A stretch of 64,000 bases of DNA from the NCBI RefSeq assembly GCF_002571385.2, contig NW_019217834.1, positions 810,808 to 874,807 of the forward strand. Direction: 5' to 3'. Positions within the stretch are counted from its first letter, which is position 1. Each line of letters starts with the position of its first letter. Below are positions 28,801 to 31,800 of the stretch, piece after piece. This DNA comes from Stylophora pistillata (taxonomy: Eukaryota). The position numbers and the translations under genes are program-made. The notes beneath the pieces are model-generated. The model did no database searches, had not been told where the DNA came from, and worked only from the letters and a program-made list of their open reading frames with translations.

Positions 28801-31800
28801 AATGATAATGTCAGAAAAAAGTTATTTACTGAAAAACATACTGACAAACCCACTTGTTACAAGCACAATATTCAGAATAATTATGAAATGACACAAGTGT
28901 ACATGGTATGTCCACAAAGCCAACTTCAAATAATAATTTTGAGATAACCACACAGTTATGCTTCATACATGATCAATAACTGTAAAAAGAAAACAAATTC
29001 TATCAATTTTTTTCCACTGAAAAACATCCTGCTGTCAATTTTACAACACGGTGAGTTATTATGCAAAATTAAATAAAGAGAAATATATCAAACGATGTTC
29101 CCTGTGTTCCCTTGCATTCAAACACAACAATTTCTTTTCCATGTGGTTTTAAAATTCACAACAAGAGTGATTGACTTCATTAAGAACAAAATGCATTCAT
29201 GTGTTTCTCTTGCAAAGAAGCGGAAGACACTGACAGGAAAGATGTTTGACAAACATCAAGAGAAGAATCAACCAGACTGAAACCATGCCAAGTGAGAAAG
29301 ACAGGAAAAGATAACTCACCCAACAGAAAGCAAGGAATAAAAAAAAAAAAAATACCCTGGCTTGTGTTTTTCTAATAAAACACAATATTTATAAAATGCA
29401 GTGGTGTAACAAAGTTCAAATCAATGTGAAATCAACTGAAGAATTTCTTTCTGATATGGCCAAGCCTTATAAATCTCGACAATTTTGGTATAAATTAAAA
29501 TGAAAATAATTCTATTATTCAGTATAATTAGCACCTTTTCGTAGAACAGGTAAGAAATCCTTTTTATCTTCCACACCATCACACGATATCTCTTGATTGT
29601 AGGGATTTTCAAGCCACCATCCCTAAGTTTTGTTGTTCGTATGCAAAACTTGTCCATGAATAAAGAAAACACATATGATTTTGGTGACGCAGCTGGTTTT
29701 TCAGCAATACATCCATCCACTCTGTCTGACTCCAGTTTTCCCTTTCTTGGGGACTTGGGAGGCTTCTTTTGCAGAGAGCCTTGCTTCCTTTCCACAGGCT
29801 TGTTGTTTTTATTCTTTCTCGGTTTAACATAGGCAGCATTTCTATGTAGCATGCGCCTTGGTTTTTTAAGTCTCACTGCATTGTAAGTTCTTTCACTACA
29901 GCTGCTGCTGATTGAAGTTGTTGTCTTAGAGCGCTGATGACCTCTTTCTGAAGAATCTGACCCCTTCCTGAGGTATCTCTTAGATTCCCCACTGGGTGAC
30001 CTATCCAACACTAGATTTCTTCCTAGAGAAGCTTGACCTCTAGTGCTTGTTACAATTTTCATGGGCAAACGACTAGAAAGTGAGTTCTCCATAAAAGCAC
30101 TACGGGGTCTGCTTTGAGTTTTAACAGTTGTTTTACATTTGTCAGTAGCTCCAATGTCATTATCACGTACAATTGCTTTAAATCGATGAGTGCTGTTCTC
30201 AATTACTGAACTCTTTGGGCGTTGAGAAGTTTTAACAGAGAGCATATTTTCACTCCGCGTTCTAGCCCTTGAATTAACATAATTCTCCATGGCAGAACTT
30301 TTTGGGCGAGTCGAGGCACTTCTGCCAACTATTTCTGCACTCTGACTTATTGAGTTTTTCAACCTCAGTTTTGCTGTACCAGTAATTGTAGTGCTAGGGC
30401 CTATCTGTTCGAGTGATGAGGTTTTATTTCCCTCCCTGGCAGGAGACTTCATTCCAGTTCTATTTCTTGGTGATCCTGGTGATTTTCGTCCACTGCCAAA
30501 ACATCCATTTTGTTTTCCTATAATTTTCTCAGAAGATGGCTTTCTTGTCCTATGTGTTGGTGAACCATGAGAAGGAGAACTGGATTGTGTTTCCAATTTT
30601 TCTGGGCTTGTCACATAAATAGAATTATCATTTGGTGTGTATTTTCCTGTTCTAAATGGAGGTGGTGAACTTAAACCAGACAAAATTTTCTCTGTTGAGC
30701 TTTCCTTAGATTTCCCAGACAAAGCCACTGATCTTTCATTCTGAGCACAATTGTCACAGGAATAAACATCATCCTTGGGAATATATTTTCCAGTGCGAAA
30801 AGGAGGCAACTTTTTGTCCTCGACCGAATATTTAACTGAAAATCCACCAGGTCCAAAGCTTTTCTTGCTCATAATATCATGCTCATTACTATTCACACAG
30901 ATGTTTTCTTTCCTTGAGGATTTCCATTCTGAATTTACCGGGAGTTTTTCACCCTTCCTTGATTTCACACCTCCAAAGTCATGTTTTGCCAGTTCCTTGG
31001 TCCATTGCTGGTAAATCTTCTCAATCTTGCGGCTAGTGATGTTAAGCTTTCCCTGATAAAGGAAGCCATTTTGTTCTCTGCCTACAATATCTGATATATC
31101 TTCACTGCAATTCATTGTTGAGCTAATCTGAATTTCAATCAGCCTTAATTATTTTCACCATACATGGCCTTCAGCCAGGCCACTTGTTCTCACCTTTCAA
31201 ATTACTAAATAATGCATTTTAAGTAAAATAGTACATTTGCCCAAATGAAGATCAAACAGGATGCATTTCAAATCCAGTTTTCATTTCATGCCTGAGGCAA
31301 AAAAAAAGGAGAAAATATGATCTGTTTTTGAGCTCTTCTCAATTGCAAATCTCTACCAAATCTGCCATAATTCCACCTGCATATCCTAGGTGATCAAAGA
31401 TCAGAATTCTTGGGATATCCTGACCCAATAATAAACCTCCTTGGCCTTCCATAATCAAGCCATAAAAGCCCAAAAGCTCATGAATAAAGATCAGCATGAG
31501 AAACACAGCCACTGTGGAAGCAGAAGAGGCATTTGAAATAATTTTTGTTCCTTTTCATAAACCAATCAAGCTCTAAAACTTCATGGTAGATTCAGTTGGC
31601 AGCTTCTTAATTGCTTAGAAGTTTTTTTCATCATTTTACCAGCCAATGACAGCTATTCACCTGCTAAAACCTGTCTAAGAGTAAAACTTCATTGGCTCCA
31701 CAAGACAGAAAGAATACAAACATTGAAACACAAGCACCTGTCTTGTCTGAAAAGTATGTAAATTCAATTTGCATTTACACAGATTACTAAAAGTGTTTAC

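Follow-up and report, generated by a model that had tools for sequence, protein, structure and literature searches.

The PKN locus and a long reading frame inside one of its introns

The stretch of DNA analysed here, 64,000 nucleotides from the coral Stylophora pistillata (NCBI RefSeq assembly GCF_002571385.2, contig NW_019217834.1, positions 810,808 to 874,807 of the forward strand), is referred to below as the window, and all positions are counted from its first letter. It carries, on the minus strand, a gene for the AGC kinase PKN, and a 564-codon open reading frame (ORF) lies on the same strand in the intron between exons 33886-33743 and 28046-27971 of this gene. An earlier reading of the letters alone (the original prediction) had proposed that the ORF could supply an alternative N-terminus, giving a Rho-independent, "PKM-like" kinase. 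We suggest, with a probability of about 0.8, that the coral's single PKN gene has a conserved alternative 5' exon, spliced onto the kinase-encoding exons, and that the ORF makes up its coding part.

Three Pfam matches above cut-off to the Rho-binding repeat HR1 (PF02185) were found at 41349-41176, 37682-37485 and 37391-37275 (minus strand), and they are the only ones in the 397.6-Mb genome. The kinase exons were located exon by exon at 28046-19834 by tblastn, using two database models in which the ORF is fused to a kinase (P0002 and P0023, discussed below). Since the HR1 matches lie upstream on the same strand and the kinase exons downstream, the ORF sits inside the genome's single PKN gene. 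Exon 33886-33743 taken alone gave a weak, sub-cut-off Pfam match (PF25336, C2_SYDE, E 0.076); we take it to resemble the closing part of the C2-like region in mammalian PKN. Of the letters of the window, 823 are N.

The features of the locus are as follows.

19834..27065, minus strand: shared downstream exons, covering linker, AGC kinase domain and C-terminal tail (tblastn; Pfam on orthologous fused models)
27971..28046, minus strand: first shared exon, beginning VTFLNP, with the acceptor for both the alternative and the canonical exons
28047..28311, minus strand: conserved block of the intron adjoining the shared acceptor (about 79% identical among corals)
28047..29534, minus strand: intron spliced out of the alternative transcript (1488 nt, GT..AG)
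29421..29534, minus strand: read-through tail of the ORF, 37 codons plus stop; intron sequence, conserved in no relative
29533..29534, minus strand: GT donor of the alternative exon (RNA joints; comparison of loci)
29535..31115, minus strand: coding segment of the alternative 5' exon, running for 527 codons between the ATG and ...YEK (RNA contigs in 4/4 runs; relatives; ratio of non-synonymous to synonymous substitution rates, dN/dS)
31116..31610, minus strand: 5' leader of the alternative exon (contig extents; 16 upstream ATGs)
31116..31811, minus strand: non-coding block conserved 5' of the ATG (65-88% identical in three other corals)
31695-31691, 31647-31643 and 31566-31562, minus strand: three CCAAT/ATTGG pentamers, putative NF-Y-type elements (invariant in 5/5 aligned sequences)
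33743..33886, minus strand: canonical upstream PKN exon, weakly assigned to the end of the C2-like region; mutually exclusive partner of the alternative exon, joined to 28046 in 4/4 runs
37275..41349, minus strand: three HR1 (Rho-binding) repeats of the canonical N-terminus, absent from the alternative isoform (Pfam matches)

The ORF is present exactly where it had been placed, at 29421..31115 (minus strand), with 564 residues from its ATG. It is the longest in the window, where 11 ORFs reach at least 150 residues and the second has 308, and its stop-to-stop frame spans 575 codons, with an in-frame stop 11 codons 5' of the ATG. The longest open frame was 188 codons in 100 shuffles at window composition and 238 codons in 100 shuffles of 64 kb at exon composition. 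GC content is 0.41 within the ORF and about 0.31-0.34 in the flanks. The repeats that had been taken to point to protein-level selection were also recovered: two copies of a 10-residue repeat (residues 104 and 152) whose synonymous codons differ between copies, and three RP[KR]S[SA]xxEN copies (residues 270, 299 and 336), again written with differing codons, the substitutions among repeat copies including CGC/AGA for Arg and ACT/ACA for Thr. The frame runs from the ATG at 31115 through 527 codons (1581 nt) to ...SYLFYEK at 29535 and is followed in phase 0 by GT at 29534-29533. The flanking exons likewise have the predicted boundaries, 33886-33743 (AG at 33888-33887, GT after 33743) and 28046-27971.

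Splicing of the ORF onto the shared PKN acceptor

RNA support was drawn from Logan contigs of four public runs over 27900-33899 (6000 letters). Two of these runs (X6 and X8) are recorded as polyA RNA-Seq, and the other two (X1 and X5), guessed to be RNA, show spliced joints. The ORF's words are present in 20/24 listed public runs (8 studies). The predicted junction from 29535 to 28046 was seen in all four runs, reading CT..AC on the plus strand, which is GT..AG on the minus strand, with 1488 nt skipped; contig depths at this joint were 65.6, 44.5, 14 and 32.7. The canonical joint 28046/33743 was also present in every run, at contig depths of 206.4, 186.7, 25.3 and 85.1. The resulting ratio of alternative to canonical contig depth, 0.24-0.55, comes from a poor measure of expression and therefore says that the alternative form is not rare, and nothing more; assembled contigs reveal neither the ends and strand of a transcript nor its level.

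The upstream limits of the contigs that carry the alternative exon are 31459 (X8), 31598 (X5), 31609 (X1) and 32066 (X6), and in none of the four runs does a canonical joint enter the exon from upstream. At its other end, low-depth contigs pass the donor into the intron in X1 (29209-29560, depth 3.93) and X5 (29387-29551, depth 3.4), where spliced contigs of the same runs have depths of 14-32.7. These run-on contigs represent unspliced RNA, whose depth is a fraction of that of the spliced form.

Next to the shared acceptor, the roughly 265 nt at 28047-28311 are about 79% identical across corals, and the remaining intron does not align. This block may be an element that controls which of the two upstream donors is spliced. 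Inside it, positions 28100-28299 have an RNA contig depth of 0 in 4/4 runs.

Relatives, conserved position and purifying selection

A word search returned 28 proteins at E<=0.001, with identities from about 89% down to 31%, of which 26 are free-standing ORF calls of 424-609 residues and two are named models fused to a kinase domain. In all 27 aligned relatives, similarity stops at YEK/V, that is, at the GT donor read through, and the tails beyond are unrelated. Searching 1.84 billion representative proteins with a profile built from the alignment found 13 members only, all of the same family (E<1e-10), including three further divergent relatives (P0070-72) that likewise end in ...YEK/V. A second word search, made with residues 1-530 of the Acropora millepora fused model, gave 10 proteins among the 8000 scored candidates sharing most words, and no additional named species among those candidates. 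Within its own genome (397.6 Mb) the ORF is single-copy, as judged by searching the protein against it.

Scanning of metagenome contigs yielded nine loci carrying the ORF (L002-L010). The VTFLNP exon lies 1.4-3.5 kb downstream on the same strand in 7/7 loci with enough DNA (L002, L003, L004 and L007-L010), L005 and L006 ending too early to be judged, and the C2 exon lies 2-3 kb upstream in four (L003, L004, L005 and L008) of the five loci with >3 kb of upstream sequence. This conserved position includes L008, whose protein is 33% identical to that of the window. The donor AAG/GTGCTAAT is the same as in the window in L002, L003, L004, L006 and L007, and reads AAG/GTGCTGTT in L008. Identity to other corals is 72-78% for the exon as against 39-44% for the intron past the donor.

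Conservation and a non-neutral dN/dS had been named in the original prediction as checks on the ORF, and both were found: the exon occupies the same PKN intron in other corals, and dN/dS is about 0.18-0.27. Calculated by NG86, with the identical L006 and L007 counted once, dN/dS was 0.175-0.269 over 14 non-identical pairs with synonymous divergence (dS) <1.2. Comparisons of the window with L002, L003, L004 and L006 gave 0.175-0.213 (dS 0.73-1.11), and those among the same four loci gave 0.219-0.269; the six pairs involving L008 gave 0.27-0.385, with dS saturated. On the strength of dN/dS we infer that the module protein is made.

A conserved upstream block with invariant CCAAT boxes

Similarity at the DNA level passes the ATG and extends to 31811 in L005, L006 and L007 and to 32105-32188 in L004 and L003; its 3' limit is 9 nt after the donor. 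In regional comparisons of the window with L003, L004 and L006, identity was 85-88% at 31199-31116, 78-80% at 31699-31600 and 65-78% over the rest of 31811-31200, with 59-66% at third codon positions and 39-44% in the intron after the donor.

By a rough estimate, about 1.5 CCAAT/ATTGG pentamers are expected by chance per 700 nt of such composition, and a fourth pentamer here, at 31429, is not conserved. It is because the other three are invariant, and not because of their number, that they point to a promoter; they lie just upstream of the contig ends in 3/4 runs. The conserved block, taken together with the lack of any canonical joint into the exon in the four runs, gives indirect support to a putative internal promoter.

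Upstream ATGs are frequent in the same interval. Of the 21 in 31811-31116, the four other sequences all retain eight, and five of the eight lie within 175 nt of the main ATG. A conserved upstream peptide was considered and rejected: the ATG of a 6-codon upstream ORF (uORF) at 31165 is retained, but in the L006 alignment the frame that follows it is shifted, and the conservation of the leader is therefore at the nucleotide level and not that of a peptide. Searches of 27900-34000 against Rfam returned no match, and the folding energy of the leader (31300-31100) is unremarkable (z 0.14). A scan of 28900-29600 for bacterial promoters and terminators gave 4 promoter-like sites (2.9 expected) and 0 terminators, a result without meaning in a eukaryotic gene and given no weight here.

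Further upstream in the intron, a short tandem array with an 18-nt unit (TTCAACATTTGAAATGAT-like), present as three overlapping 28-nt copies, was noted at 32824-32887 on the plus strand.

A basic module of 527 residues

The module encoded by the alternative exon has 527 residues and a pI (isoelectric point) of 10.3, with 108 K+R, 47 D+E and 110 S+T. Disorder-promoting residues make up 60% of it, whereas the last ~45 residues reach 44% order-promoting residues (a crude count of composition). Blocks that are invariant or nearly so across 29 sequences are SSRKENIC, P.PFR.GK, RPKSS..EN, R.RT.SEN, YLRKGSDSS, PRK.RR...RN.YV and one block of 15 residues. The module contains two PPFRTGKY motifs, three RPKSSxx... 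motifs and the basic cluster PRKxRR..RN.YVK, and its last conserved block, DKFC... plus a hydrophobic and basic stretch of 20 residues, adjoins the shared linker.

We presume that the RxxS and RxRxxS motifs are basophilic-kinase sites; in our reading RKGS resembles a PKC pseudosubstrate core in which Ser replaces Ala, and the basic cluster presumably a bipartite nuclear signal. Pfam gave no match above cut-off for the module (best EXOSC1, E 0.068) and none to HR1, and a profile search of the PDB found no relative (best E 0.4). As judged from these comparisons, the module is a family of its own, seen only in corals and more distant relatives.

Elsewhere in the window, four overlapping ORFs of 220-276 residues are present at 13442-14299, on both strands.

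Proposed mode of expression and control

We propose that transcription would start at an internal, TATA-less CCAAT-box promoter, between about 31460 and 32070, and that the conserved leader, rich in upstream ATGs, would be followed by translation from the ATG at 31115. Splicing in phase 0 from 29535 to 28046 would then make the module and the canonical 5' part two mutually exclusive beginnings sharing the acceptor at 28046. The canonical part would supply the HR1 repeats and the C2-like region, hence Rho/Rac control. The alternative product would be, on the architecture of the fused orthologues P0002, P0023 and P0096, a PKN of roughly 960-1020 residues in which the three HR1 repeats and the C2-like region are exchanged for the 527-residue module, and in which the linker VTFLNP...RLQRQKK is retained. 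Of the swap put forward in the original prediction, HR1 and C2 for ~527 basic residues, the splice (4/4 runs) and the basic character (pI 10.3) hold, and the assignment of the lost exon to C2 stands at a sub-cut-off match.

With the HR1 repeats missing, the alternative isoform should not be switchable by Rho; judged by domain content, it would be a product of the PKN gene but no Rho-effector PKN. The new module would bring control of another kind, through basophilic phosphorylation sites and possibly nuclear targeting: its conserved phospho-acceptor motifs and ordered C-terminal block may serve control by phosphorylation, targeting or both, and the conserved upstream ATGs may damp or gate translation, perhaps conditionally. 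We take the retained linker to be the stretch that follows the C2-like region in mammalian PKN, where an autoinhibitory segment was mapped, and for this reason constitutive activity is not assumed. The "PKM-like" activity of the original prediction is doubtful as worded, because the isoform gains a conserved module of 527 residues and is not a bare catalytic domain.

Evidence against the proposal and alternative explanations

Several observations weigh against an alternative PKN exon as we describe it. All of the RNA evidence comes from assembled contigs, and because these break at the shared exon, the presence of the alternative exon and the kinase exons on a single molecule in this genome is something that we infer. 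On its short side each of the two joints has 26 letters and a further 4 that are ambiguous, which is the length that a k=31 contig retains at a branch and falls below the 31-letter bridging rule. The leader has 16 upstream ATGs in 31610-31116, for which a scanning model predicts depressed translation of the main ORF, and 8 of the 14 within-species variants in the coding part are non-synonymous and 6 synonymous, which is weak evidence and compatible with no more than mild constraint. At L006 no C2 exon was found within 5.4 kb upstream. The module is probably mostly disordered, a judgement made from composition. Finally, the X6 contig extends to 32066, and another contig (X6 only, depth 8.24) joins 32381 to 35689-35716. 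The latter join has no GT/AG on either side and starts midway through an upstream PKN exon, ~27 nt short of the true donor; as it was seen in 1/4 runs and at low depth, we rejected it as an upstream splice into the exon, and it is probably an assembly or template-switch chimera.

These X6 contigs are what would favour an internal or cryptic exon of transcripts from the canonical promoter, which would be non-productive, degraded or re-initiating at ATG 31115: one passes the upstream ends of the other three runs' contigs, and the other appears to reach an upstream PKN exon. However, the join looks as a chimera would, no canonical joint enters the exon in 4/4 runs, the conserved upstream block with its invariant CCAAT boxes suits a promoter, and purifying selection on the frame is strong, which speaks for translation, so that we regard this explanation as improbable. 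The same selection bears on the idea that the transcript acts mainly as an RNA, or as a promoter or splice-competition decoy tuning canonical PKN, with the ORF rarely translated. The upstream ATGs (16 in a 495-nt leader, with 8/21 conserved in the longer interval) and a nucleotide conservation of the leader exceeding that of third codon positions would fit such a role, but a dN/dS of about 0.2 over 527 codons and a frame that stays open down to 31% identity cannot be accounted for without translation, and the leader shows neither unusual RNA stability nor an Rfam family; we give this reading very little credence.

An independent nested gene, with an unspliced, separately terminated transcript and a free-standing 564-residue protein unrelated to PKN function, had been called equally possible in the original prediction and is now disfavoured. 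Most database relatives are free-standing calls (510-609 residues), and the shallow X1 and X5 contigs do cross the donor into the intron. Those calls, however, are ORF calls on contigs whose tails after YEKV are mutually unrelated, none of the relatives conserves the 37 read-through codons, and past the donor the identity of the intron falls to the 39-44% noted above. Spliced contigs are 3.6-9.6 times deeper than run-on contigs of the same runs, and no AATAAA was read by eye in the 90 bases after the stop, leaving a nested gene a slim chance. A large intronic ORF without a known domain might also suggest a domesticated or decaying transposon, but the sequence has one copy in the genome and no transposase, reverse-transcriptase or integrase domain in Pfam, it occupies the same site across corals, and it is spliced to the host gene. 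The repeats around it are all <=33 nt and mostly imperfect, and so there are no terminal repeats. A match to a transposon ORF, which the original prediction had named as refuting, was not found (a single genomic copy and no transposable-element domain in Pfam), and we rejected a transposon origin, the chance of which is negligible. An alternative 5' exon of PKN, supported by RNA structure and by evolution, is the reading that we prefer.

A wider scenario is offered tentatively, and we think it unlikely as a whole. It holds that corals and the relatives at 31-37% identity have evolved a PKM-zeta design of their own in PKN, with an internal CCAAT promoter, translational gating through the conserved leader with its many upstream ATGs, and a Rho-independent kinase. 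Their lineage-restricted, disordered module, in place of the HR1/C2 switch, would use its invariant basophilic sites (a 14-residue motif present three times, and RxRTRSEN) and its C-terminal block for autoinhibition or targeting under the control of phosphorylation. What drives the enzyme would then be other kinases or stress-regulated translation, and not Rho.

Earlier annotations and comparison with known kinases

Five species already have the isoform in their automated annotation, which gives it three different names. Fused models are XP_015756303.1, "serine/threonine-protein kinase N2-like isoform X1" (Acropora digitifera, 976 residues), and RMX41175.1 (Pocillopora damicornis, 966 residues); the cluster of the former also holds XP_044175656.1, "pakB-like isoform X1" (A. 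millepora), XP_074632730.1 (A. palmata) and XP_067016659.1 (A. muricata), of 1020 residues. Read over their full length, RMX41175.1 and XP_015756303.1 switch from the module to PKN at ...YEK/VTFLNP. Three fused models were scanned with Pfam (A. millepora, P. damicornis and A. digitifera), with matches to Pkinase in 3/3 and to Pkinase_C in 2/3, and with none to HR1 or C2. P0096 and P0002 matched Pkinase (E 3.8e-64 and 1.2e-48) plus Pkinase_C, and P0023, a model shorter at its C-terminus, gave no Pkinase_C match. These coral models are orthologues of the window isoform, with a module 57-89% identical and the same junction to linker and kinase; they are unreviewed computer predictions with inconsistent names (PKN2-like, pakB-like, uncharacterized). 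The protein word searches returned no fused model for Stylophora pistillata. We found no paper citing pdam_00019193, XP_015756303, XP_044175656 or LOC141891646, and a literature search of main texts found none on a coral PKN isoform.

Products of this kind are already known: AGC kinase isoforms whose mRNA starts within the gene and which lack the regulatory front end. PKM-zeta, the best-known case, is essentially a bare catalytic domain and is constitutively active. Its mRNA leader carries upstream ORFs that regulate translation (PMC5061749). The coral isoform would resemble it in belonging to an AGC kinase gene, in having a second mRNA from within the gene, in lacking the N-terminal regulatory domains and in a leader bearing uORFs. 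Unlike PKM-zeta, it has an added module of 527 residues, keeps the post-C2 linker and belongs to PKN and not to an atypical PKC; because of the added module and the retained linker, autonomous activity cannot be assumed.

Among PKN genes, Drosophila Pkn has four annotated transcription starts with their own translation starts and with the kinase exons in all, and only three of the four encode the Rho-binding N-terminus (PMC4059237); the fly form without the Rho-binding end is a FlyBase annotation. Bearing on this comparison is the profile search with the module, which found no member beyond the 13 representatives, all near the coral set. Another route to a kinase uncoupled from Rho is caspase-type cleavage of mammalian PKN1/2, which removes the HR1/C2 part and has been reported as activating. 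Such proteolysis is post-translational and adds no sequence, whereas the change in corals is gene-encoded and conserved.

What is new here is that the exon is shown to be conserved, under selection and spliced as predicted, together with the promoter-like block and leader and the recognition of the module as its own family.

Significance

The coral PKN isoform represents no new principle. PKN is a textbook Rho-effector kinase whose biology is read through the binding of Rho to HR1, and reef-building corals would have a conserved, well-expressed second product of their only PKN gene, without that switch and with a module under selection in its stead. Transcript and phosphoproteome data on coral "PKN" would therefore mix two differently controlled enzymes, and the gene models that name the isoform pakB-like or uncharacterized need unified naming. 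Beyond corals, the locus may be viewed as a natural experiment in how AGC kinases exchange their regulatory front ends by means of internal promoters.

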